64,000 bases of DNA, taken from Epithemia pelagica. Lineage: Eukaryota > Protista > Bacillariophyta. Where the stretch lies: the NCBI GenBank assembly GCA_946965045.2, contig OX337239.1, positions 2,232,001-2,296,000 on the forward strand, given 5' to 3'. Every line of letters begins with the position of its first letter. Within the stretch, counting starts at the first letter, position 1. A model generated the notes under the pieces. That model worked only from the letters and a program-made list of their open reading frames with translations, ran no database searches and was not told where the DNA came from. The position numbers were made by a program, and so were the translations under genes. This document shows, one piece after another, positions 1 to 21,092 of this stretch.

Positions 1-334
1 TTCGGGATGGAACGTCTGAGTTCAACGATCACCCAAACATAAAAGGGCTCATAACCTACCACGCCAACCTGACCCACCCATACCTCCCATGACGGCTGGG
101 GCTGGCGTCCGCAATAAATCACAACCACCTCACCACGTCGGTCCACGTCAAAACAAGACGTGGAAAGAGTAGATCAAAACAACCTGAAATCCACCCACTA
201 TGAGATGGGAGTCTAAAGTTCCATAACAATCATGACTAGGAGAATAAATTAAATTTCAAGCGTAACATTATGCCATCCAAACCATACAGCAACACTCAAG
301 ACCCCTGTCTACCCGCTCACATGACCAAATCAAT

Positions 335-868
335 TTAACGAAAGAAACACAACAATGGATGCCTTGCCACCAACTTGACCATCATTTCAACATCCAAGGA
401 CAACTGCAAAACCGCCGTCCAATTCTCTCCATAAATCTTTTGGATCACCGCTGCATCGTCATCTAATTCCGCACTCTATCCCGACTTTTTAAGAATCATA
501 AAAGTTGGATCGACCCCCAAAAACTTATACAACTCCGCTTTAACATGGCAAACCTTCCAATAATAGTTAATAATGACGGTGAACTCCCCTAATAATGCAT
601 TCGTAGCCACACGACAAGACAGCCAATTAACCACATTTTCATGGAACGTGACCGGCCATTCGCGACCAGACGGAATGGAACAATCATACCCACGCTCCCA
701 CTCATTCAACAGATCAACATACAAATATGGTGTTGAGACCATTGAGCTCACGTGTGTTCCGTGGACACACTCCCTTGAACCGCCAGCGATCCGACAGACC
801 AACCTGAGCCTGAAATTCCACTGACTTATCGCTTGTCTCAAAATCACAACTATCCATGGACAATTCAA
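335..868 (-). pseudogene. Ubiquitin-like-domain accessory gene with a premature TAG (476-478); paralogue of the C-terminal part of ORF 11548-12738
   Basis: IPSGREWPVTF...WLSCRVATNALLGEFTVIINYYWKVCHVKAELYKFLGVDPTFMILKKSG aligns with FPSGIQRPVTF...WLPCRVKTNNLMGELIVHVNRFWEIRDVMAELYKTYLPGVDPGFMILKKSG. Reading through the TAG gives SAELDDDAAVIQKIYGENWTAVLQLSLDVEMM..., which keeps matching TSDQLGINATVVETIFDDNAIVTLELEFNVGLM..., up to a TAA at 335-337. Confidence 0.8.
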
Positions 869-967
869 TATAATGGCACATGATCTTGACTATTTAACCA
901 ACAACCCAACAGAAATCTATCTCACAGAATTTATGAGACCAATGAAAGCCCGATTTGGCTGTCTGAT

Positions 968-1169
968 GACGGATGATAGAACCGGACTTCACGACTCAAA
1001 TTTCTGACGGAAATGGACTGTCAATCCAAAACCATCAATGCATGTTTGATTTGTACACAAACAATTGATTGGAACGGACAAGAAACGACGCAAGGCCGAC
1101 GGATGATAGAACTGGGCCTCACGAATCAAATTTTTGACGGAAATGTACTGGTGTCAATCCAAAAACATC
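968..1169. repeat. Two imperfect ~70-bp direct repeats just 3' of the Helitron ORF (968-1036, 1098-1169)
   Basis: GACGGATGATAGAAC...TGACGGAAATG...TGTCAATCCAAAA(C/A)CATC occurs twice. Confidence 0.85.
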
Positions 1170-1179
1170 GAAAGCGGTA

Positions 1180-4100
1180 CTATCCCCTTTCCTCCTCAAA
1201 CAGAACAACCTTTTCAGGTAGCTGTTTAGTCTCCCTGAACAACTCATAGAATCTCGCACACTCTTCCGAAATGCCTCTTGTTTTGTCCAAATTTAACGGC
1301 TGCCGCAAAAACAAACCATTCAAAGTAGCACAACGAGACAAACACACATACACCCAATTATCCGTATAGTCCCATGAACTAATCACCAAATGACGCAACG
1401 ACCTTCCCTGCAATTTATGTCCTGTTCGTGCATTTGATACATTAATCGGAAACTGCTTCAGCCTCATAGTCTTCTTTATCCTCACATTCCTACCAAATTC
1501 CGGCAGAAGAAACTGAACAGTCGCTGTAACTTTTGTAGCCTCCAAATTCACTACGAAACCTTCAACACCATCTTGCATTGTCACTCTCAAACTCTGAACT
1601 TGTGACACACTGACACACCAAACAAAGTAGCCATCAATACATATCTTCTCCATATCACCAACTGTAACTCCTGGCATCAACACAACTTCACGGAAAGTGC
1701 ACATTGCCCCATTAGCAACACACCTCTCAACATCGATATTGTCATTAATCATCAATGGACGACCATAGTAAAATTTCAACAATGGGTCGTAATGCTTATT
1801 ATCTTTACTCTTAACATGTCCTTCACCACAATACGCATATAACATGTCTTTACTGGCCGAATTAAAGTCCACATAGTCTCTTCTCGTCTTTGGCTTCTTC
1901 CAACGCAAGTCAGACGCACGAACGCAAATCGTATGCAAAGGGGGGTCCCTTTCCGGATCCTTTGAATGTGTTTCTGTTAAATGTTTGCAAAAGATGGCAT
2001 CGTTAATAGCCGCACGATCAATGTTGGACTTTGTGGCATAATCTGCCGTAGACGGTATGTCGCTCTCACGTGGCCCCCGTGGACTACCAACAACACGTGT
2101 ATTCAATGTATCCAGATCTATTGCATCAGGCCCAATATCTCTATACCTTGAAAGCAGTTCACCGTAATCTGGATCGTCGACGAATCTATGATTAGTTCGA
2201 AGCTCCATAAACGTATGTACCCATTCATACCAATGTTCAAGATCCTTATACACAAACAAGGGGTATCCTTTCACGGGTTTCAACTGCGTAAAATCCCCAG
2301 CAAATAACACAGGAATTCCTCCATATCGGGCAGTTGCATTTTCTTTGTTCTCACGCAGTTTATGATGCAGACTTATAAGCACATCTTTGGATGCAAACGA
2401 AATTTCATCCACAACCAACATATACGCATTTGTCCACTCCTCGACCTCTCCATCAACCTCTCGATTTATAGCACAGGCATTATGGGTTGTTTCACCATTT
2501 ATACCAACAGCAGCCGCACCAGTAAGCGCGGTCACAACAATAGTCCGCTTGTCGTACTTAACACTCAAATTGCGGCACATGCTTTTGGCATATCGGACAA
2601 CCGATTTTAAAACATGGCTTTTCCCCGTACCACCTGCACCAGAAAGGAACGCGATGTATTGATGACCTCTATTCACTTTTTCCAATTCTTTTTTGCGTAA
2701 ACTAAGAAACCTCGTATTCTGGTGGTTTGCCTCCAGTTCATCTTCGGAGTCGGCTGCTGCTTGTGTTCTATTTGCCTCCTTATATAATTCCAGCACAAAC
2801 GCAGCTACTATTGACTCAAAAGCTCTTTTTTGATCCACATCAGATCTAAAACACACATCCGCATACGCCCGAATATTCTCCAATGTCCCAGTTGCCTGCA
2901 GGTGACTGTTAGCATCTACACCCATCACACGCTCACGAAAACGGACAGACAGTTCATGCAAACTTCTATAAGTGATTCTTCTTGATTCAAATACCTTCTC
3001 ATCCACACTTGCATGCTGTACAAAGGTAGCACTGTCTGCCTGCTCATCAAAACTGACACGAAACACTGATGGCGACGAGTCAGGCAACTCCGGACAGACC
3101 ACCAAGTTTTCACCACATTTGTTTGTCCCACATGACCGAATAAACCTGCTATCAACTGCCAACAATCCATCAGCGTTTCTTAACAACGGCGGACTCACAT
3201 CCAGGCACGAAATCAATTCATCAAAAACTGCATCCATGCCAGGGTCGATTCCTGTTTCGCACTCTTCCTCAGAATCACTTGCATCACCAACAACAAGCGA
3301 TGGTTGCTGTGTCACTCTTTCTAGAGAATCGCTCGGTCTCCCGCAATTAAGACTATTACGACAGTCTTGTATGTTTGAAAGAACCGTCAAATGCTGTTTT
3401 AAAATGATACCACCTGCCAAACCCTGCTGGAATTTCCCCAGATATCTCCTGTTCCCTGATCTAAGATCCCCTGTCTGCCGAAAGGGGTAAAAAAGAAGGC
3501 AGGCCTTCTTTGCATAAGATTCCATGGCTGCCAAACCAGAATCAAGAACAACATCTCCCGATGCATCAACATTGTCAATTGACCGGTCCCCAAAAAATTT
3601 TGTATCAACAAAATCCAGAAAGGAAATAAGTGGAATTTTGTCTTTCTTATTTTTTTTCAACACCAAATTACCCCGCGACGGATGCTCTGCTACCCACTCC
3701 ATTCCACGGTTTTTAGAGGTCGCACGCCCAACAGAATAACTGCAGAGGAAGTCATAAAGACACACACCCTCTAAATCATGTGGCCTATATAAGTAATCAG
3801 CCACAGACGATTTCAGGAAAACCTCGCCGTCATAGGCATCACACGAAAACTTCTCAAGTTTGTCTGACTCAAAATCCCTGAGATCAACATATGCAAATTC
3901 ATGCGAAAACCCAAAACGAGACTCATTCCTCAACAAAAACGCTGCCATTGGTGCACTGCATACGTGTGCCCCCGTAGAAAGCAAAACAGCACCAATTAGC
4001 CCACGCATACCGTGCAGGACTCTGTCATTATCAGTATCGGCAGTGTTATTCTCCCGATTCTCATTGACCCCTAAATCGTTGCTTAAATACGTCTTCATTT

Positions 4101-6838
4101 TACGAACCATATGCTTCGCGGCAGAAGCAAAATGCTCATTGTCCTCATTCTGCGTATTCTTCGACACATAGCATGTCATATACATGACACTACCACCATC
4201 GACACCCGCAACCACATTGGTGTTACAAGCAAACAGATTACTTGCCGCACGATTATGGATATTCATCATAACATCTGCTCTGGAACGCTTATGACCTACA
4301 TGGAAAAGCTGTCGTGCACGGTTGTTCCCTTTCCAGTCGTACCAATTAGTGTAATGCTCATCAAAAACCAAAGTGGTTTTTTCAAAGGGAAGGTTGGGAA
4401 TCTTCATCCGGCATTCTCCCCCTTTTTTGAAACATGCTGTACAGTGATTCGAATTATGTAGGTTCCTCAAAGCTGCGACAAACCTTGCAGCTTGTTTATC
4501 GTCGAGGATCTTCGGAACAAACGGATGATTATGCCGCATCAATGCAAACTCCATAAGTAGCTGATATTTTGTGTGTTGTGAAGAAACATGTGGCCAAAAC
4601 GGTTCATCGTCCCCCCCCTGCAGAGAAAACATTGGGTCAAGTAGGATTTTTACCAGATCCTCACTTGAGTAGCCTTTGTCACAAGTCCCACACTTCATAA
4701 TTTGTTTCCCACCGAAAGCCGTCTTTCCAGCCCGTGTACGGAGATTTCGCAAGTCCTGCGCACTGCAGTGCTCTAAGACAGACCCAGAGCAGCCATCATT
4801 TGTGCACACCGGTTGACAATCGTTACCATGCAATTCTGCACTTGACACGGCTGACACATATTTCTCCATTTGCTTCTTGAACGTATCCCTGAGGCTTTCA
4901 TCCGATAGCCCATTTAGCAATTTTGCCCAATCTTTCACCCACAGCAGAAAATGTGCATGTAGGGTTTTTCGTCCCTGTTCCTCAACTGCGTAACACCACC
5001 CACTTATGTCTCCAAATATTCCAAAGCAGGGTTTGTTTTTCTGTTCAGTTTCGTCCCACCCTATCAAATGTGCGATTGTAATCCGGAGTACATTCTCAAA
5101 ATCAAATGCACACAGCCCTGGATTATCAACCCTAATTTCCTTACATTCCTTAGCATATTTTGCAAGTTCACTGAAATCACAAGTGAATGGATCGGGTGGT
5201 GGACGCTCGCCCGTCCCGTCCGTCGACATTACCCTGATTCTGTAGTTAATTGCATCCTCTGGTGTAATGGTAAACAACAAAGACGGCAAACCATGATGCG
5301 AAATCATCGAAAACATTCTCTGTCGGGCCCTTTTTGCCGCACCCGACGTATGGCCCATGGAAGAAGTAATCGCTCTCAACTTTTGAAGAAACATGTATCC
5401 CGGGGTGGAACATGACACGTTGTCCTGCATCATCCGCAAGGCCTCCTCAATTGCCTCTGTCGAAATATCTGGAAACGACTGTGCTTGTGAATCAGACACC
5501 CTAAGGAAAGTATTGGCAACCATTCTTTTTCTCTCAAACATATTATGAAGGACACATATAAAGGCTGCCCCATGAAAACGTGATGGGGCTAACATAGACA
5601 AATGTTTCAGATACCCAACCCCCTGCCGCGATTCACCCTCCGAATTACGACCGCCAATTCCGTAGGGAAACTGAAGGGGGAACGCACGAATCAAGTTGTC
5701 ACCCTCATAATCACGGAGTAGATGTGGGGTTGGCCGGGATATCAATGTTGCTTGCTTGTCAGACTCTGGTGTTACTAAATTTTCTACAGAAGCATTTCTG
5801 AACTCCTGCTGAGTCGCAAACCCACCATTACCTGTTTTGGGTTCATCAGAGTCCGGGAAAACCGCATTGATTTCAAAAACCAGCTCGACATTTGACGACG
5901 ATTCAGGAACAATCTCTGCTTTGTCAAGGAAAATTGGTTTCAGCATTGCATCTGTTGGGAGATCATATTCTGCATATAGTGGGTTATTTGCTTTTAACCA
6001 TAACAGTGCATTTTGCATTTTTTCCCATCTCACTTCGGTTTTCTCCCTCACTTTTGCACGCTGGGATGACGTAAACGGGCCGCATAATACCACCGCGATT
6101 GTAGGAATGTATAACTTCTTTTCTGCGTTTTCTTCCCCACCCAAGCTATCATTGCTTTCTCCTTGCTGGTGTCGTCGTGTGGTTGCCTCATTACACCAAT
6201 TAACAACGCCATTGACGGCATCAAGGTCATTATAGTACAGCGAATGCCATCCCCTTATTGATTTATGGCTACCAGCGGTAAATGAAAAAATGTGTTTGTT
6301 TGTCCTAGCGGGCGCTATCATAGCCAATTCAACCTCATTAAGGTCTGTCAAACACACAGGAGGCTTTCCAATCGATAGGCCGTTAACAATGGCATAGCGT
6401 GGTGGGTGCAGTCACCTTTCTTGTTTTTCATGTTCTGAAGGTGCGAGTGACATGCCCTACAGCATCCAAGGCCTTCTTTTGTGCCCTTTTTGGCGGGGTA
6501 TGATTTGGGGGACAAAACCAAATTGTTCAGAAACTTATACTCCTTTCGCCTAGTCGTATAACAGTGCTGTGTATAGTGCTTCTGGATAGCAACCTGCCCT
6601 TCCTGTTTAATCCCATACTCCAACAAACCCAAGTTCTTCTTCGACAACACAGAACACAAACGTTTGTGACGGATGTCCTGTATGGTCAAGCATTTCTCAT
6701 CACCGTATGGAATCAATGTGTCACAAACACAGCATATTTTTGCGTTGGAGTTGCCCTGTGCGTCTGTGTACAACAACCCTTGCGCGCAGATTCTGCATTT
6801 CTAATGCCCTGTGATCTTGCCCTAAAATCTGCATTCAT
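1180..6838 (-). CDS. Helitron Rep/helicase (HUH endonuclease + Pif1-family SF1B helicase); two single-base frameshifts near the N-terminus (~6778, ~6405)
   Basis: HUH motif VEEQGRKTLHAHFLLW, Tyr motif YMTCYVSK, Walker A GAGGTGKS, Walker B LVVDEIS, AGDFTQLKPV, and QFP...ARTGHKLQGRSL...YVCLSR. Adding one C/G at each run joins MNADFRAR...ARKG-LLYTD...CCVCD...GDCT-PPRYAIVNGLSIGKPPVCLTDL into the 1725-aa ORF. Confidence 0.93.
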
Positions 6839-6884
6839 GACTAAAATGAAGCTAAAAATTTAATAAACAAAATGCATGTCGCTG

Positions 6885-7395
<511 letters not shown>

Positions 7396-7695
7396 TATGT
7401 TACTCAGTGTAAGTCGCTGTAAGCACGAAAGCTGTGGCGGGAATTCCTTTGTTGTCAGAAACAACTATTGAGGAAGCCTCTTTTCCAACAGCCGCGTTGC
7501 CGTAGTACCCGACTAATTACGAAACGCGGGCCCCTCACACCGTAGTAATCCAGGTTGTCAGTATATCACAGACAATAATGTCACGTGACTGGCAGCTTCA
7601 CCTGTTAGGGATCCACGCACTGAGCCTGTCCTTGTAGTCTTGATACTTGAGTCTTGCCCAATCACTGTGGGATCGCCAGTCCCTTGCCCGTACTC

Positions 7696-7846
7696 CACAC
7701 GGCCGACGACAGACGGCGTCCTCGGTCAACCAAGATTCAGATTTCCGTTCAGATCGCGAATCAGTCGCCCTCTTCACACGGCCGACGACAGACGATGTCG
7801 TAAGACAACCGAGATTCAGTTTCGGTCCCGCGGAATCAGTCGCCCT
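7696..7846. repeat. Two ~79-bp-period direct repeats, each containing a GATTC...GAATC inverted pair
   Basis: CACACGGCCGACGACAGACG at 7696 and 7775; GAATCAGTCGCCCT closes both units. Confidence 0.8.
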
Positions 7847-8688
7847 GTCCGTGATGCAGAAAAGAGTACCGACTATGTGGCGAGCACAGCCGCGACAGAT
7901 GTTTCGTTAGTGCGCAATGATGTGCCGTAGCACGCGGAGTTGTACCTGTCGAGTACTTTAAACTCCGCCCCCCTGACGGTATCCAGCCGGTCTGGCAAGG
8001 ATCGCCCTCTTGTCAACCTTTCGGTCTACTTGTACTCAAGGTACGGGATGGGGGTGTACAACAATCTCTAGGGATTGGAAATCCAGTTGCCGGTTGGATT
8101 GGTTACCACCGATGGTTCCCCGGATTTTGTTAGCAAAGACACAGAACTCACACACGGAATCAAGCGACACACTTCCTTCCTCAGATCGTTTCGCACAAAC
8201 ACACGTGGTTACACGTGGTAACTCAGCCGCCACAAGAACACGCGGTTACACAACAATACGTGTGATAAACTTCGTACCAAGTACCAACAACCAACCGACA
8301 AATTATGCTGTGAGCTGTGAACTGTGAACCAGCACCGGAAAACAAAATAATGAAAGCAAGAAATAATGAGACAAGATGGATGGAGTGGATGCTGATCAGT
8401 TCCAATCCGTAATGTACTAGAAAAACGTGGACGGCACACAACTAACACGCCGGACTACTACGTTAATCACCACGCTAGAATAGTACCACAGACTGTACTA
8501 GTGTTGTGTTTCACGCTGCGGTCGTGTTTGATTGTTGAATATGTGTGGTGCTTGAAAGATCGTGGAAATAGACTGCACGCCGTGGGCTGGTGGGAACGGA
8601 CTAGGTAATTTGATTGCTGTGCATCGCGTTGTTGTGTCTCTGTCAGCATTGGCATCTCCCCCGGTACGGCGTGGTGTTTCACGCTCTT

Positions 8689-8985
8689 GTGTTCCACGGT
8701 CCTCTTGCGGTCGTGGTTGATTGTTGAATCTGTTGTTGTTTGTGGTGTCTCCGATTGCATTGGCACTTCGTCGGGTGGTTCACGCTGCTGCATTCGTGGT
8801 TGATTGTTGGGTATGTGTGAAAATTGTTGTCGGTTGTGTTCCACGGTCCTCTTGCGGTCGTGGTTGATTGTTGAATCTGTGTGCTGTTTGTGATGTCTCC
8901 GAATGCATTGGCACTTCGCCCGGTGATTCACGCTGCTGCATTTGTGGTTGATTGTTGGGTATGTGTGTAAATTGTTGTGTGTCCT
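8689..8985. repeat. ~147-bp tandem repeat (two copies plus a partial copy near 8504); possibly a frameshifted Q/T/P-rich coding repeat on the minus strand
   Basis: GTGTTCCACGGTCCTCTTGCGGTCGTGGTTGATTGTTGAATCTGT at 8689 and 8836. The peptide QQF(S/T)HIPNNQP.MQQRE.P.EVPM.SET.QT appears in two different minus-strand frames. Confidence 0.75.
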
Positions 8986-9229
8986 GATGATGACATAAAT
9001 GGACCGTTGCAGTCCACGGTACGACTCGACCTGGATTCGACGTTAATGGACTGATGGAGATGGCACGACAATCAACCATAACAGCATTCATTTCCTGTTG
9101 ATCTCATAAATCCAGCTGAGAACAATTGGTGTCTTATCTGGAGAAAGTTGAGTAAGACAGCATGGTGAGTTCCGTTCGTCGTGCAATAACCATGGTGCTT
9201 GGCCCGGCGCTTACTTACCGTCCCCATTT

Positions 9230-10042
9230 TTGCAGACCAACGCAACAGAAACATCCGATGTGTCTCAGGGTGCACACAGAGTGGTTACTCCCGTTAAGCT
9301 CAAGAGGAGTCCATTTGCTTCGAAAGGGAAGAAGAAAGTGAAGGACGTCCGTGCATCTGCGGCTGGGCCACAGGTGACGGAAGTTCACCTCGAACAGTGT
9401 GGTCCGAAGGGAGCGTTTATTGTTGGGTATCTTAAGCTTCAGAAGGCGGGTGTTGAAGAATCGGGATATCTGAAGCCAGTCACTGACGAAATTCTCAATA
9501 GTGCGCAAGGCGAGCTCGAATCGTATGACATGCGCATCACGACCCTACACCGTCGTGTGTCGCGCGAAAAGAACCTTCCGTTGGTGAAGGGCCCCCCCAA
9601 GCCGAACCAAGGTGTTTTTTTCTGGCCATGTGTTGTCGCGTGCCCGCCTACCGAGCACGATCCGTTGGTTGATAACACTGCGCACGCGCAGCTCAAGAAA
9701 GAATTCGCGGAGAAGCTAATCGAGATTCTTGAGCGCGCGGACAATGAGAACCCCAATGTTACTTGGGAAAAGGACTATATTTACAAGGCGGAGTTCGACC
9801 ACACTCAGAGCCCGCCTCGCGCGCTTGATCATCTATTTACAGATGAGCACGTGGCGGAAATAATCGATAGCTACTTGGCCGAGGAAAGGAGTCCCACGAC
9901 GGATTTTTATTCCCAGTTTTTTGACGGTGGTGAAGGTGGTGAACACGTGGAACATGACTCGGTTTTCAGCGTCGACCGTAACGGTCGTTATTCGAATGTC
10001 GCGCGCTTCAAGTTCGGATATCCCGGCATGACTCAAGGCTGA
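9230..10042 (+). CDS. Hypothetical 270-aa protein in the Helitron-associated block
   Basis: Long ORF with globular, non-repetitive composition and a basic N-terminal patch (KGKKKVK); no family recognised. Confidence 0.6.
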   Translation: MQTNATETSDVSQGAHRVVTPVKLKRSPFASKGKKKVKDVRASAAGPQVTEVHLEQCGPKGAFIVGYLKLQKAGVEESGYLKPVTDEILNSAQGELESYDMRITTLHRRVSREKNLPLVKGPPKPNQGVFFWPCVVACPPTEHDPLVDNTAHAQLKKEFAEKLIEILERADNENPNVTWEKDYIYKAEFDHTQSPPRALDHLFTDEHVAEIIDSYLAEERSPTTDFYSQFFDGGEGGEHVEHDSVFSVDRNGRYSNVARFKFGYPGMTQG

Positions 10043-10652
10043 GGTCTTGTATGAAGAGCACGGAGAGATTGGCCTTTGATTAGTTGTTGTAGTAATCTAA
10101 TCTAGAAGTCTTAAGGCCGGCGCCGCAAGTGTTTTGTGCTTATAGGGTTGCATACAGATACAGGTGGTTGTCCTTCACTGCGATTCGCGGTGATTCTCCT
10201 ACTTTCATTTTCCTCTCGCTCTGCACATGACAGCACTGTTGGGCGGAACAACAAGAGCGGTCGAAGTCGATCGTTTCGAGGTAGCTTTAAGAGAAGAAGC
10301 CAAGCCACATCGTCTACCGCTGGTGTTTCAACCTCATTTGCAATCACCACAGTCAAACCAGCACCAGTGGCATTGCAAGGATTGGTTCCCAAAACTAATT
10401 GTTGGACGATTGTGCTACTTTCTCAAGTTCCGTTGTCCATTTGGCTCTCACTCCCTATGGAAATGAACAAGAAGATCCCAACAAGAAGATCCCTATAGAA
10501 AAGAACAAGAAGATGAATGCAAAAGAAACTACTGTCACCTAAATTGAGACGTGGTAAAGACGCAGACGGCGGAAAGGTACTCAATTTTTCACGTCAAAAA
10601 ACAATGGTGTTTGGTTTCTTGATCCGCCGCAACTGGAGACGAGCCGCAACAA

Positions 10653-11447
10653 TCAGACATACGCCTCTTCAACCAAACGCGACGATCGGCACGAGTCTCG
10701 CTTGCCTCCATTGCTCTCCATTTGTTCGTTCGTGTCAACCAACACAACGGAATCATCATCTTCTTCTGAATCATCGTCCTCATGGTCTTGCCCGTCTTGT
10801 TTCTCTTCTTCTGAATCATCATCCTCATGGTCTTGCCCATCTAGCTCCTCTTCGGAATCGTCTTCCTCTTCCTCGTCGTCTTGCTCATTGTCGCTCTCCT
10901 GTTTGCATTCTGGTGTTGACGAAAGCGAAAAATTCTCGGGAAGGTAAGTCTCGCCGAAATCACGATGACTTCCCATCACCATAGCTAGTGTAATAGCACC
11001 GTTAGAAAGATCGCTGTCGTTTTCGTACACATATGCCTTCATAGCAATCCGTTTTCCGTTTTGCTTGGTTAGGCGAATGTCACATAGAGGAATCCGCATC
11101 TTTTTTGCAATGGTGCGTAAAACGTGAATTGCCGTGGAGTACTTTTTGACTACGCAGGTACGGAAGTCGACCGTATCACTCACACGCACGTAACAATCCA
11201 CGGGTTGAAAGGAACAGCCGCCGTCGATCGTTGTGCGTGCACGATAACCAGGTGTGCCTGGATGACGCAAAAAGCCGGCACGGTTACGGTAGATGGCACG
11301 ACGAGGATACATGTGACGATACAATGGAACAACCAACGTAGCATATAGCCATGGCACGGTCCGTCGTCGAAATGTGTTTGATTGTTGGGTGGGTTTTCGG
11401 TTGGTTGTCGTGTCGGTCGGTTTCTGTCCACCGTGACGAGTTTCCAC
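10653..11447 (-). CDS. Ubiquitin-like-domain protein with acidic tail (ATG start probably 11312)
   Basis: CYVRVSDTVDFRTCVVKKYSTAIHVLRTIAKKMRIPLCDIRLTKQNGKRI follows the ubiquitin pattern (beta-beta-helix-IPxxxxRL-GKxI). It is followed by D/E-rich repeats (DGQDHEDDDSEE x2). Confidence 0.6.
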   Translation of the reverse strand: METRHGGQKPTDTTTNRKPTQQSNTFRRRTVPWLYATLVVPLYRHMYPRRAIYRNRAGFLRHPGTPGYRARTTIDGGCSFQPVDCYVRVSDTVDFRTCVVKKYSTAIHVLRTIAKKMRIPLCDIRLTKQNGKRIAMKAYVYENDSDLSNGAITLAMVMGSHRDFGETYLPENFSLSSTPECKQESDNEQDDEEEEDDSEEELDGQDHEDDDSEEEKQDGQDHEDDDSEEDDDSVVLVDTNEQMESNGGKRDSCRSSRLVEEAYV

Positions 11448-11547
11448 GGCACGACCTCCGTGGAGGTGTGGTTACGGTTTGCGGGTGGGTTTTTTAGGTA
11501 ACAGAATAGAAGAAAAGGTTAGAGACGAAGTTGTCTTATAAATTTTC

Positions 11548-12738
11548 GTGTCCACCACAGTCTGCTTTTGTGCACTTACCTCAGTTGTCAAGACTATGGT
11601 TCAGTTGGTTGTTTTGCCGTCGCGGCACTTCGTTGTTGGGGCCGACGACGAGATGGCGCAGTTTATTGTTAAAGTTTCGCCGACGTGGGGATTCGGTGCA
11701 ATGTGCATGCAAGACACTCCACTCGACGTCATTCGGCTTCGCGTTTCCGAAGCGTTGGAGGTTCCGGAAACTTTGATTGGCTTGGCAGATGAACAGACAA
11801 ACCAGGTGATCGATGGTGGTGAGTCTCTTGGTCATGACGGACGAATCATGCGAGTTCGGTGGTCAGTGGATTCGAGTGAGGGACACAGCTGGGGATTGCC
11901 TACGGTTGAGCAAGATTTGGTATTGAAGGGTAGCTACAGGATCTATTTTCGTCCGCCTACTACGTCCAGGCCCTTTCCGATTGACAAGTTGTCGACGATT
12001 GAGGGAGGATTTCGTATTTGCTTTCCGTTTTCGCCGACGTGGGGATTCGGTGCAATGTGCATGCAAGACACTCCACTCGACGTCATTCGGCTTCGCGTTT
12101 CCGAAGCGTTGGAGGTTCCGGAAACTTTGATTGGCTTGGCAGATGAACAGACAAACCAGGTGATCGATGGTGGTGAGTCTCTTGGTCATGACGGACGAAT
12201 CATGCGAGTTCGGTGGTCAGTGGATTCGAGTGAGGGACACAGCTGGGGATTGCCTACGGTTGAGCAAGATTTGGTATTGAAGGGTAGCTACAGGATCTAT
12301 TTTCGTCCGCCTACTACGTCCAGGCCCTTTCCGATTGACAAGTTGTCGACGATTGAGGGAGGATTTCGTATTCGCTTTCCGTCTGGTATTCAACGCCCTG
12401 TCACGTTTGGTAGTCCATCTCACGACTGGCTCCCTTGCCGTGTCAAGACCAACAATTTGATGGGTGAGTTGATTGTTCATGTTAATCGTTTCTGGGAGAT
12501 TCGTGATGTGATGGCTGAGTTGTACAAGACCTACCTACCGGGGGTTGACCCTGGTTTCATGATTCTCAAAAAATCGGGGACGAGCGACCAATTGGGCATT
12601 AATGCGACTGTGGTTGAAACGATTTTCGACGACAATGCTATCGTGACATTGGAGCTTGAATTTAACGTGGGATTGATGGATGCCGTTGTACAGGAACATC
12701 AGTACTTGAACTATTTTCCGCGTGTGGATCTCGTCTAA
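11548..12738 (+). CDS. Multi-ubiquitin-like-domain protein (ATG probably 11596) with an internal 118-aa duplication
   Basis: QFIVKV...QDTPLDVIRLRVSEALEVPETLIGL...VIDGGESLG...IMRVRW and LPCRVKT...GELIVHV...EIRDVMAELYK...GVDPGFMILKKSG...IVTLEL both align by eye to ubiquitin [46 protein letters not shown]. There is no C-terminal GG. Confidence 0.7.
   Translation: MSTTVCFCALTSVVKTMVQLVVLPSRHFVVGADDEMAQFIVKVSPTWGFGAMCMQDTPLDVIRLRVSEALEVPETLIGLADEQTNQVIDGGESLGHDGRIMRVRWSVDSSEGHSWGLPTVEQDLVLKGSYRIYFRPPTTSRPFPIDKLSTIEGGFRICFPFSPTWGFGAMCMQDTPLDVIRLRVSEALEVPETLIGLADEQTNQVIDGGESLGHDGRIMRVRWSVDSSEGHSWGLPTVEQDLVLKGSYRIYFRPPTTSRPFPIDKLSTIEGGFRIRFPSGIQRPVTFGSPSHDWLPCRVKTNNLMGELIVHVNRFWEIRDVMAELYKTYLPGVDPGFMILKKSGTSDQLGINATVVETIFDDNAIVTLELEFNVGLMDAVVQEHQYLNYFPRVDLV
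11675..12382 (+). repeat. Near-perfect 354-bp in-frame tandem duplication
   Basis: 11675-12028 matches 12029-12382; the only mismatch I saw is T12019/C12373 (FRICFP vs FRIRFP). Confidence 0.95.
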
Positions 12739-13034
12739 TCGGAAAGTACGAGGAACGGAGAGAGTGAATGGGTACGATCGGTTGTAGAAACGTAATCCCG
12801 CCTATATTCTAAAAAAACTTTAGTATGCTAATACTGTACGATTTTTCGTCGGCACGCCAAATTCTTACTAAGAATGCCTATGTCTGGGGGGATCTTACTC
12901 CAATTTGTGTTGCCTTCGGATGCATTTCTACAAGTCTAGGTCTTCAGCTTCTATGTTTGGCTAGGTGTTAGTGACAAAGTTGCTAAAATCCTTATGGCGT
13001 GGGGGGATGTTTCGTGGGTTGGTTCGTTGGGCGT

Positions 13035-13154
13035 GATTCTGACGTGGAACAGCGTGGTGAAAAAATGATTTTATTAATGGATTGATAAAACAGACGAGAT
13101 TCTGACGTGGAACAGCGTGGTGAAATGGTTTCTATTTAATGGATTGATAAAACA
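13035..13154. repeat. 63-bp-period direct repeat carrying TGACGTGGAACAGCGTGGTGA; an inverted homologue lies at 130-150
   Basis: Motif at 13040-13060 and 13103-13123. The reverse complement of 130-150 is TGACGTGGACCGACGTGGTGA. Confidence 0.85.
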
Positions 13155-14570
13155 ATGGATGACCGTTCTTCGATCATTGTTTTTCTTCGGGGCTGAATGG
13201 TTTTGAATAGGGGTTGGCCCGGCGTTTTCTGCCTAACGTGGGAAGCTTTTGGTGAAAAGTACTGAATTTCGACTCTTGAGCTAAAAAAATTTTATCTAGT
13301 CTTTGTTGTTTTCCCACCCCCAGACCCCCTTAGCCTGCCGGCTTACCCGACACGTTCATTCTGAACTCAGTCGAACAAAGACACATTACCTCGGTTTTGT
13401 TGGCCAAGTCGCGGTAAAATCGCACCTTCTGATGGCCATTTGACCGACAATTTTGCGATGACTAGAAATAGTCGACCTGGGTAGCTCCGTAGTAATTGGC
13501 AATGATCAGCGTCTTGAAAGTTATGTTGGCCGAATGGCCATCAGAATTTCTGGTTGGTTGGCTACGTACAGACCAGATGCGGCAATGGAATCATGGTAGT
13601 CAGGAGTAGCTACGACAGATCATACATAGTCTCTAGGAGAACCTACTTGAGTGTAGCAATTTGCAATAGAAGTGGATACGACCATGAATAATAGGGATCT
13701 CTCTTCGGATTAATACTACAGTGTGTACAACAAAAAAGAGGACAAACGATGAGGAGCAGAGCTTTTATCATGTATGGAGTTGGAGTCGAGGATGCAAGCG
13801 AAAAAGGGACATCCGGCAAGCCCAATGATACCTTTTCAGCACCACCCATGCACCAGTGCAAGAACAACCATCCATGGAGTTGGTGCAGGTGAGTATCCAA
13901 TAATGCAATGGTGCAGTCCAATTTGAAACTGTTCTACGGATAGCCCGACTATATGCTTCCAAGTTGGGTGTAAACTAGCCATGTTGATTGATCAAGATTT
14001 GTCCACTGCCAAGCAACGGAAATAGCAATACGTGAACAAGACTTATACTATAGCTATACATGACACTGGGAGTAGGCAGAGAAGGTTTACTCCTCTCATG
14101 CTTTCAGCTACCACAAACACTCTTGTTTCTCGTCTGGTTCAAGGATCTCCCGGAACTCAAAGAATTTCGATTGCCGCCACTGAATGGCAAAGTGGGTGGC
14201 AAAATTGATGAATACTATGCTTCTACCTAGTGTTATAGAGACTAAGAGAGTTGTTCATGCAAAAAACACATAAAGATCATCCCACGATTCCACCACTGGG
14301 TCACCAGAAGGTGAACAGTAGCCACTGTAGACATTTTGGTTCGAAAATACAGAACCCAGAGTGGTGTAAGGGCCGTGATCCACAGAAGACCTTCCAATGC
14401 ATCCACAACCTTTGCCATGTTGATTTTATAGCCAACATCGGTTAAGATACGCAAACCAAGCCCAAAAGCCAGAGGAGCTTTGCTTCACTCAAAAACTTGA
14501 AATCTCCTTTGTGACGACGGGTAGTTTTCACGCAACTAAGCCATAGTCTCCCTATTTCAGAAATCCTCAG

Positions 14571-18726: not shown

Positions 18727-20136
18727 CTAGGTTCTTGGTTTGGTCGTTTTGGGTTTGGTGGTGGTTGCTCGTTTCCGTTTTTTGGTAACGGATCGTCCCG
18801 AGTTGTTTCCAGCTTGGCGTTTGTGGGGTCGTTTCGAGTTGGAGGTGGTACTTGTCTTGCTGTCCTTGGTACTAGCAGTAGTAGTTGCAGACGGTTTGCG
18901 GGTCGTCGTTTTGGGCCCTGTGGTTCTTTTCTTGGTGGCTTTCTTGGGATTCTTGGTGCGACGTTGATGTTCCTCACTCTCATCTGGATTGGATGCTTCC
19001 GTTTCGTCATCATCATCATCCTCGGAATGTGAAACACTGTCGTCCTGGTGGTCTTCATCGTCGTCGCCGTCATCTTTCTTCTTCTTCTTTTTCGGTATGT
19101 TCTTGTTGTGCTGGTGTGGCGTTGGCCCTGGTCCTTTTCCCCACAAGGACGACGACGACGACGCATGAGTTTCACCTTCCATACCTTGCAAAGCGGACCC
19201 CGCTGGATTCAGACGGGCAAATTCCGTCATGTGAGATTCCACTTGAACCACAGCGGCCTGGTGGGGTGTTTTGTGGTTGGATCCCACCAACACCCATGCC
19301 GACGGTCCTGGTACTAAATGCCCCTTGTACAATTGACCCTTGAGATCCAACAGGACTATAACATGACAATATAAAGAATAAGAAGCAGAGTCGTCCATCC
19401 AAAATGTACCCAGTCGAGTCCAAACGATTATAACATGAACGAGTGAGTGTGGTGAGAAATAACCAGAAAGTTGTCTTTTTTCTACACACTGGTGCATGCG
19501 CCACACACCATACGTACGTTTGGGAGTTTTGTTGCTATTGGGTGGTTGCTGTAAGACTTCTAATCGTCCAATGGCACCAGTACTTCCTTCAAAGTCCAAC
19601 AAGGCATCGGTATCCGCCGCATCCAAAGTCTGTGAGTTGCTCGAGGTTTTTTTGGTAGATGACTTTTTCTTCTTGTTCTTCTTGTTGCTATTGGACGAGT
19701 CATTTCCTCCTTCTCGAGAGGATGTAGGAGGATCGAGTTGGAGCAAGACGGTCCGTTCACTCATGGCCGAAGCATGGCACGAATTGTGCATCCACAAGGA
19801 CGACGAGGCCCAAATCAATTCCAGACTATTCGTAGTAGTCGTCGTCGTCGTCTTGCAATCGTCGTCCTGTGGATGGGGCTTGTCGGTACTAGCAGTCGTC
19901 GAGGCAGTACTCGTGGTCCTCTGGCGAGCCGTTCCTCCTGGAGTTGTGGTGGTGGTGGCGGCGTCCATGGCCGAGTCATCCATCCACGGTTCCTCCTCCT
20001 TGTCTTGGGTTGCATCCAATTCCTCCTCAGCGTCTGGCACCTCTTGCTTGTCCTTTTCGTCGTTTGTCAAATCCTCCTCCTCCCCTCTGGTCTTGTTGGT
20101 TGATCTTGTCGCAAGGGTTGTTGTTGGGTTCGGCAT
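18727..20136 (-). CDS. BIN4: BIN4-like DNA-binding protein (topoisomerase VI accessory subunit); in-frame intron 19356-19517
   Basis: LLDFEGSTGAIGRLEV and LLDLKGQLYKGHLVPGPSAWVLV...VQVESHMTEFARL resemble plant BIN4 DLSGDMGAVGR...LDLKGTIYK.TI.P..T..V...AKIEAIMNDFIQL. A GTACGT...TTATAG intron of 162 nt is removable in frame. Basic/acidic tail. Confidence 0.72.
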   Translation of the reverse strand: MPNPTTTLATRSTNKTRGEEEDLTNDEKDKQEVPDAEEELDATQDKEEEPWMDDSAMDAATTTTTPGGTARQRTTSTASTTASTDKPHPQDDDCKTTTTTTTNSLELIWASSSLWMHNSCHASAMSERTVLLQLDPPTSSREGGNDSSNSNKKNKKKKSSTKKTSSNSQTLDAADTDALLDFEGSTGAIGRLEVLQQPPNSNKTPKRTYGVWRMHQCVEKRQLSGYFSPHSLVHVIIVWTRLGTFWMDDSASYSLYCHVIVLLDLKGQLYKGHLVPGPSAWVLVGSNHKTPHQAAVVQVESHMTEFARLNPAGSALQGMEGETHASSSSSLWGKGPGPTPHQHNKNIPKKKKKKDDGDDDEDHQDDSVSHSEDDDDDETEASNPDESEEHQRRTKNPKKATKKRTTGPKTTTRKPSATTTASTKDSKTSTTSNSKRPHKRQAGNNSGRSVTKKRKRATTTKPKTTKPRT

Positions 20137-21092
20137 GATGAGGAACGAGAGAGTCAAAAAGTGCACTGTCTGTAGTCTACCGATGATGATGATGATATCT
20201 CTTTTCCTTCCTAGAACCGAGTGCGACAAAGGTTGGATCTTGTTGAGAGTTGGGTATACAAGAGAGAGAGAGGCGAGACGAGACGAAAGACACAATCACC
20301 ACCGCTTCTTTGGACACCATGGTCGTCTCCCAACACAACAAAAATGACAGACCATCCCTCCCCGACTCCAAAAAAGTCGCTTTCGGGTCGCGAATCATCA
20401 GGGGCGCGGCTCGCAAAACGATCTTTCGCGCGCGTGCAGTACCACATTGATCGGAGGACGGACAAACGACCAACCGCGCGCAGACTTTTCCCGTTTTCGC
20501 CCGTTGGTGCGGTGCGACGAACGGGACGCGACGACCATGCGGCTGGTGCGCACTGCGCACAACCAAAATCGCGCACAGATCAACAAGAAGAGGAAAGATC
20601 AAGTGCAAGAAGAGAAAGAACAAGGTACGACAGAGCGTCTTTTTCTTGGTGATGGATTTGTGTGTGTGTGTGTAGTTGGCAGACCGCGGTGTGGTTGAGG
20701 AGGATGGATGCTTGTCCCGAAGAAATGCTCGTTTTGTCCCTTTTTCAAAAGGAGGATGGTATCTCCCTTCTGTTGGCAGAGTTTGGAAGATGCAATCTAG
20801 TATTCTAGTTTGGTGAGGATGATGAAGATTCTGTAATGTGGAGTGTGGAGAGTCCACAAGTGGATTCGTGGTCGGGGTTGGTTGGGAGTGGGCTGCTTGT
20901 GATTGTGCGAGGATGCACGTACCTGAGTTCTGAGTTGGATACATAATATGGTTGCTCCTTCTTTTGGATGATTATTACTCACAACACACCTTTTCCCTCC
21001 TCCTTCATTTTAGTTGCAACCTTGTGTGGTGGAATATCCTCCATTGTTTGTCGCTTTCGGTTCCCTGTTTTGATAACCTGTACTTTTGATTC

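Follow-up and report, generated by a model that had tools for sequence, protein, structure and literature searches.

A Helitron2 element with orphan accessory genes in Epithemia pelagica, one of them probably headed by a ubiquitin-like domain

The window analysed here is a stretch of 64,000 nucleotides from the diatom Epithemia pelagica (assembly GCA_946965045.2, contig OX337239.1, positions 2,232,001 to 2,296,000). Positions 1-13374 of the window are nearly all of one 13,382-bp transposable element of the Helitron2 type (HLE2), which lies on the minus strand. It contains the transposase gene RepHel, three accessory genes called here orfB, orfC and orfD, and a pseudogene, orfA (Table 1). The original prediction had placed three open reading frames (ORFs) with ubiquitin-like (Ubl) domains in the neighbourhood of a Helitron. 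These correspond to orfA, orfB and orfC; they were found where predicted, and all are inside the element together with RepHel. Our preferred explanation, which we hold with somewhat more confidence than doubt, is that of a recently active Helitron2 with three lineage-specific accessory genes, in which orfC probably begins with a Ubl domain and an adaptor role is the most likely one.

Table 1. Features of the Helitron2 element and their positions in the window (aa, amino acids)
Feature	Position	Strand	Remarks
HLE2 element	1..13374	-	Block common to three copies, flanks unrelated on both sides
Right 3' subterminal terminal inverted repeat	13..24	-	Complementarity with the 5' terminus at 11 of 12 bases
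orfA pseudogene	323..868	-	Decayed paralogue of the C-terminal half of orfC, two in-frame stops
RepHel transposase (DUF6570, Helitron_like_N, PIF1 helicase)	1180..6838	-	Pfam; main ORF 1180-6357
Internal microsatellites (TGT)124 then (TTGTCC)24	6885..7392		Between RepHel and the accessory genes; length varies between copies
orfD, orphan accessory ORF	9230..10042	+	Antisense to RepHel; 35% identity to sister family, 45-62% to relic
orfB accessory gene	10653..11312	-	219 aa from first ATG; 264 aa from upstream GTG (ORF 10653-11447)
orfC accessory gene	11596..12738	+	Antisense to RepHel; 380 aa from ATG here, 262 aa in most copies
Candidate ubiquitin-like (beta-grasp) domain of orfC	11647..11883	+	Model residues 17-97; duplicated copy at about 12001-12237
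In-frame tandem duplication, 2 x 354 nt, 99% identical	11675..12382	+	Within orfC, window copy
5' terminus with left terminal inverted repeat	13362..13374	-	TC at 13374, 13373; host T at 13375

The limits of the element were defined by comparing three copies contained in the ENA assembly ERZ21939226: those on ctg1205l (L001-L003), ctg1271l (L005, L006) and ctg1328l (L008), the last being the window's own locus. Two further loci of this assembly include a sister element (ctg1333l, L004) and a relic (ctg1298l, L007). The three copies are 98.5-99.5% identical and their flanks differ completely on both sides. Those on ctg1205l and ctg1271l match the window from its left edge to 13375-13378, beyond which the three sequences are mutually unrelated for at least 18 kb. 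On the left side, where L008 provided the DNA preceding position 1, all three diverge 8 nt outside the window. In addition, contigs of three public runs show many differing loose ends exactly at 13376-13384. Since the shared block ends in three unrelated loci, the element is 13,382 bp long, from position -7 to 13374, and its 3' end is 8 nt past the left window edge. An alternative, in which ctg1205l is the window's allelic haplotype with a large insertion, was rejected: homology does not resume within 18 kb on the right-hand side, the flanks on the left are different as well, and there is a third locus.

HLE2 elements (Helitron2/Helentron) are marked by short terminal inverted repeats and a T-T target, and DUF6570 has been reported almost exclusively in this group (PMC11417382). 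In all three copies a T directly precedes the 5' TC, as it also does in the sister element, and the 3' end, CTG, is directly followed by a T. The insertion is therefore between T and T (T^T target). The 12-nt terminal inverted repeat motif also bounds the sister element. The right repeat is followed by a CCC-GAA-GGG mini-palindrome, into whose last three bases the left edge of the window cuts. As a 3' stem-loop (a 3-bp CCC/GGG stem with a GAA loop) this is weak and differs from the predicted minimum-energy fold; at the equivalent 3' position of the sister family there is a clear 5-bp GC hairpin. With its RepHel, its 12-nt inverted repeats (12-16 nt in the group) and its T-T target, the element belongs to HLE2. 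Pfam analysis of RepHel and the other ORFs gave no Exo_endo_phos match for an apurinic/apyrimidinic endonuclease, and the element is therefore the Helitron2 variant rather than a Helentron.

A single ORF of 1725 aa carries the Pfam matches of RepHel: PF14214 (E 8e-16), PF05970 (E 1e-17) and PF20209 (DUF6570, E 9e-9). Only the ctg1271l copy, among the three, has an intact RepHel, of 1886 aa. Relative to this form the window gene is broken by frameshifts near 6405 and 6776 (6776-6779), one of which is a C-run that is one base shorter, and the ctg1205l gene is broken at a different place. Judged from the reading frames, only one of the three copies (ctg1271l) looks autonomous. The orfC cluster includes 8 sequence variants and the orfB cluster 10, each on at least 12 contigs, all from ERZ21939226. 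The family has about a dozen young copies.

Two of the accessory sequences are related to each other. The orfC frame, open from 11548 to 12738 in the window, includes a 354-nt in-frame duplication (Table 1) that is absent from ctg1205l and ctg1271l; contigs of runs X2 and X3 contain the corresponding joint ('skips 354'). Of the eight orfC variants, only one has the 380-aa form, and six retain the full 262-aa frame. orfA aligns with residues 263-396 of the 11548-12738 ORF (44% identity, E 1e-28) and, given this likeness and its two stops, is a decayed paralogue. The description of two ORFs as clear paralogues is therefore correct for orfA and orfC. In a comparison of orfA with the orfC C-terminal domain (C-domain), the nonsynonymous divergence (dN) is 0.48 and the synonymous divergence (dS) is saturated. 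A 725-bp block (436-1160), including most of orfA, is missing from the ctg1271l copy, between L005 20082 and 20083. orfA is therefore dispensable; this copy is the one with the intact RepHel.

orfB shows no detectable similarity to orfA or orfC, either by sequence comparison or by profile-profile comparison. Its product has a conserved N-terminal part of 130 aa followed by a variable acidic tail. This tail (10653-10870) is long, rich in Asp, Glu and Ser and derived in part from a 45-bp tandem repeat. In it, a run of acidic residues with Ser leads into a hydrophobic VVLVD core, an arrangement like that of a SUMO-interacting motif; in P0003, the protein of the sister family, this core is not conserved. 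orfD has no Pfam match and no PDB match.

The sister element (L004 3570-16122) has the same terminal motifs as the window element. Its RepHel is split into at least four ORFs and is 66-78% identical in nucleotide sequence to that of the window; overall the sister family is about 25-35% diverged in DNA sequence. It holds homologues of orfB (57% identity) and orfD (35% identity), with the orfB-like gene inverted relative to RepHel and the orfD-like gene closer to the 5' end. No orfC was detected in L004. Comparison of the N-terminal 130 aa of orfB with the sister-family copy gave a dN of 0.29 and a dS of 1.44. The ratio of about 0.2 shows that orfB is under purifying selection at the protein level. 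The ~99% identical copies of the window family are too similar to each other for such a comparison. orfB and orfD have long accompanied this Helitron lineage and have been constrained as proteins.

To place these genes more widely, orfC, orfB and the sister-family orfB were compared by word search with approximately 15 billion proteins, including the ORF calls of ERZ21939226 itself, and a full HMMER search with orfC was performed against 1.84 billion representatives. In both searches all relatives came from one assembly only (ERZ21939226), too narrow a set for a deep alignment. Among the ~15 billion proteins there was no host homologue unlinked to Helitron sequence. Three of the four loci examined are inside Helitron copies and the fourth is the ctg1298l relic, so that the predicted co-occurrence with Helitrons is borne out. 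In the relic an orfC-like sequence adjoins an orfD-like one that is frameshifted, and no RepHel occurs up to 10 kb away. Next to it, a 1.5-kb segment (L007 10522-12017) is repeated 8.3 kb away (18823-20318) with 99.7% identity. The position of the accessory ORFs inside the termini of an element with ~99% identical copies in three unrelated loci supports the conclusion that they are element-borne genes, copied with the element, and not simply its neighbours.

Helitrons commonly carry gene fragments as passive cargo. The ORFs could likewise be pieces of host genes captured passively, or frames open by chance, that do nothing for the element. The absence of any family or domain match would fit this, as would the decay of orfA, the truncated forms among the orfB variants (143-233 aa) and the different arrangement of the sister family (orfB inverted, orfC absent). 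However, the orfB ratio of about 0.2 across a saturated dS, together with the retention of orfD in the sister family at 35% identity, argues for long-term protein-level constraint while these genes resided in Helitrons. Moreover, no host parent gene was found among the ~15 billion proteins, and most orfC variants keep their full frame. We consider passive carriage unlikely.

The nature of the encoded proteins was also addressed by structure prediction. The AlphaFold2 model of orfC (262-aa form) includes a region, residues 17-97, with the strand/helix order beta-beta-alpha-beta-beta-beta, in which residues 20-89 have a predicted local distance difference test score (pLDDT) of 46-63. In a Foldseek search with this model every top match is a ubiquitin-like domain (SUMO1, ISG15 and the Ubl of BAG6), with E of about 0.01, TM by target of 0.70-0.73 and a root mean square deviation (rmsd) of 2.7-3.0 Å. 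VIA-align gave Z of 7.0-7.6 and rmsd of 2.2-2.8 Å over 71-75 residues, covering the whole of ubiquitin. Superposition of residues 17-97 on SUMO1, ISG15, Ufm1, the Rad23 UBL and ubiquitin gave rmsd of 2.2-3.0 Å over 71-79 residues, with Z of 7.0-7.6. In a search independent of Foldseek, using 48,161 chains, the top 50 are all beta-grasp/Ubl structures, with a Z of 6.3 at rank 50. An Atlas shape search with orfC retrieved ubiquitin, UBX and YukD clusters. In the model, then, the N-terminal domain (N-domain) of orfC is a beta-grasp, and we think it rather probable that the protein itself has this fold.

None of the ORFs ends in GG, as originally noted and as confirmed in the translations, and there is no di-glycine after the last strand of the modelled orfC domain. 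Because of this, the candidate domain would be non-conjugatable. It resembles in this respect the type-2 UBLs (Rad23, Dsk2/ubiquilin, BAG6, parkin): lacking a C-terminal GG it would be an integral, non-conjugated domain, and the orfC model superposes on theirs over the whole domain (Z 6.6-7.3, rmsd 2.3-3.0 Å). Unlike them, it has no profile match and only 8-15% identity, and Pfam detects no UBA, UIM or other ubiquitin-pathway domain in orfC.

A number of results weigh against our explanation. No ubiquitin-like family was identified by Pfam, either with whole proteins (E<=1, orfC) or with excised single domains (E<=10), nor was any ubiquitin-like chain retrieved from PDB by phmmer and per-domain profile searches. 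The PDB sequence and profile matches that were obtained are at chance level only (GHL15, guanylate cyclase, a BTB domain), and those of orfB to the ryanodine receptor stem from its acidic tail. The models are poor because there are so few relatives: mean pLDDT is 36 for orfC, with the matched domain itself reaching only the values given above, and the orfB model, made with its only two relatives, is uninformative (pLDDT 38). Z values below 8 can arise from common arrangements. Among the ~99% identical copies, which differ too little to reveal current constraint, orfC dN and dS are about equal (0.010 and 0.011), and its N-domain compared with the L007 relic has a dN/dS of approximately 0.54. 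Finally, any function of the accessory genes is pure inference.

The original prediction went further and proposed that the three ORFs are built of about five Ubl domains and form a decoy or adaptor system acting on ubiquitin/SUMO-dependent silencing or on RepHel turnover. Several observations are compatible with this. The orfC N-domain models as a beta-grasp; language-model features place both orfC and orfB near Rad60-SLD/ubiquitin clusters (0.87-0.89, below the 0.9 level and thus leads only); a partial beta-alpha-beta-beta order is seen in the low-quality models of orfB (residues 38-94) and the orfC C-domain (residues 175-237); and other Helitrons carry enzymes of the same pathways (OTU, UCH, Ulp1). 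On inspection, the five domains consist of one fold-supported type doubled by the private duplication in the window copy, the orfC C-domain and its copy in the orfA pseudogene, and one in orfB. Two of the five thus come from a private duplication, and a third belongs to a pseudogene that the copy with the intact transposase has lost. There is no sequence or profile likeness to ubiquitin, and profile-profile comparison found no relation among the three domain types, which could therefore not be pooled into a deeper alignment. Foldseek gave no meaningful structural match for the orfB model, and the orfC C-domain (common to orfA) and orfB both model below pLDDT 50 with no usable match. The family is, in addition, confined to one genome. 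What survives of the proposal is that the genes are element-encoded and that one domain type, in a low-confidence model, has fold support. We regard the five-domain system as distinctly improbable, and the ubiquitin claim overall is weakly supported. A narrower version, in which the Helitron lineage evolved its own non-conjugatable Ubl adaptors (orfC and perhaps the acidic-tailed orfB) engaging host ubiquitin/SUMO or proteasome machinery, seems to us doubtful.

Another group of stramenopile proteins should be compared here. Crinklers (CRN) have headers with a predicted Ubl fold, and their genes cluster with Helitrons in Phytophthora (PMC5289972). orfC shares with them a stramenopile host, a predicted Ubl N-terminal domain, followed here by a C-domain with no assigned fold, and association with Helitrons. 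It could be asked whether orfC is a Crinkler-like conflict protein (a Ubl header with an effector domain) that is merely riding in Helitron-rich DNA. However, orfC has no sequence match to Crinklers and no recognisable effector domain. Pfam gave no match with the whole protein (E<=1) or with the excised segments P0001:15-100, 90-160 and 150-250 (E<=10), and no LxLFLAK-like motif is visible in the translation. Unlike the Crinkler genes, orfC is inside, not beside, the element, within the termini in every copy examined. With no match to the header domain or its motif, this possibility was set aside as very improbable indeed.

A closer parallel is provided by other HLE2 elements, which in the HELIANO survey stably carry genes for RPA, OTU, UCH, Ulp1/Peptidase_C48 and 2OG-Fe(II) oxygenase, among others (PMC11417382). 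The text of this survey names 20 stably carried domains, none of them a Ubl domain, and its approach covers only domains detectable by Pfam (PMC11417382). The present element resembles these in its RepHel with DUF6570, its short terminal inverted repeats and T^T target, and in its accessory ORFs, which lie upstream of RepHel in frames of their own and are retained among family members. It differs in that Pfam recognises no domain in its accessory genes, whose relatives are confined to a single genome, and in that EN, RPA and OTU domains were not detected here by Pfam.

We can now return to the explanation of a Helitron2 with lineage-specific accessory genes and describe how it might operate. 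orfD, orfB and orfC are carried upstream of RepHel, with the dead half-orfC duplicate, orfA, downstream. The accessory genes are copied along with the element, and orfB and orfD are retained by selection on the protein. The orfC product would probably begin with a non-conjugatable ubiquitin-like beta-grasp domain, as modelled. The accessory products would most likely be small adaptors, with binding partners among the proteins of the host or of the element, that act in transposition or in controlling it. Such a role would parallel that of the proteases OTU, UCH and Ulp1, which other Helitrons stably carry. Integral ubiquitin-like domains usually act as docking modules (for example, in Rad23, ubiquilin and BAG6). 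An adaptor role is the most economical reading. A decoy or anti-silencing role would be speculation.

Other sequences within the element and at the compared loci can be described briefly. The microsatellites (Table 1) yield poly-Asn, poly-Leu or poly-Cys ORFs. A 148-bp unit is present as two tandem copies (8687-8978, 93% identity) that fall within a 154-aa minus-strand ORF of repetitive composition (8467-8931). Between orfD and orfB, approximately 190 bp (10230-10420) are exchanged for unrelated sequence in the ctg1205l copy and, judged from L006 compared with L002, also in part of ctg1271l; a 'skips 200' joint in contigs of the public runs agrees with this variable spot. Outside the 5' end, the host DNA at 13376-13546 has a k-mer depth 5-25 times that of the element in three runs and includes a 23-nt inverted repeat (13427-13449 / 13524-13546). 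The window copy seems to be inserted into a different repeat of higher abundance. On ctg1205l (L003 13922-21236), downstream of the element and of a piggyBac-like transposase gene, a pair of genes (185 aa and 539 aa) occurs as three tandem repeats with a period of about 2.7 kb; the 185-aa protein has a weak GCR1_C match. A light-harvesting gene is a neighbour in L004, with fucoxanthin chlorophyll a/c proteins as its best match, which identifies the host as an alga with chlorophyll c.

Helitrons often retain accessory genes, and several of these encode enzymes of the ubiquitin and SUMO pathways. To our knowledge, nobody knows what role such genes play in transposition. Carrying accessory genes is in itself typical of Helitrons; those described here are orphans. 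At present, the finding is mainly that of a well-delimited Helitron2 family with orphan genes. It is a clean case, with exact termini, about a dozen young copies, a sister family and accessory genes that appear to be under purifying selection, and it offers a tractable algal system for asking what Helitron accessory genes contribute. Should orfC prove to have a ubiquitin-like fold, this would be a new type of cargo and would point to protein-protein adaptors rather than enzymes. If the lineage has indeed evolved its own Ubl adaptors, these would correspond, as protein binders, to the OTU, UCH and Ulp1 proteases found in other Helitrons.

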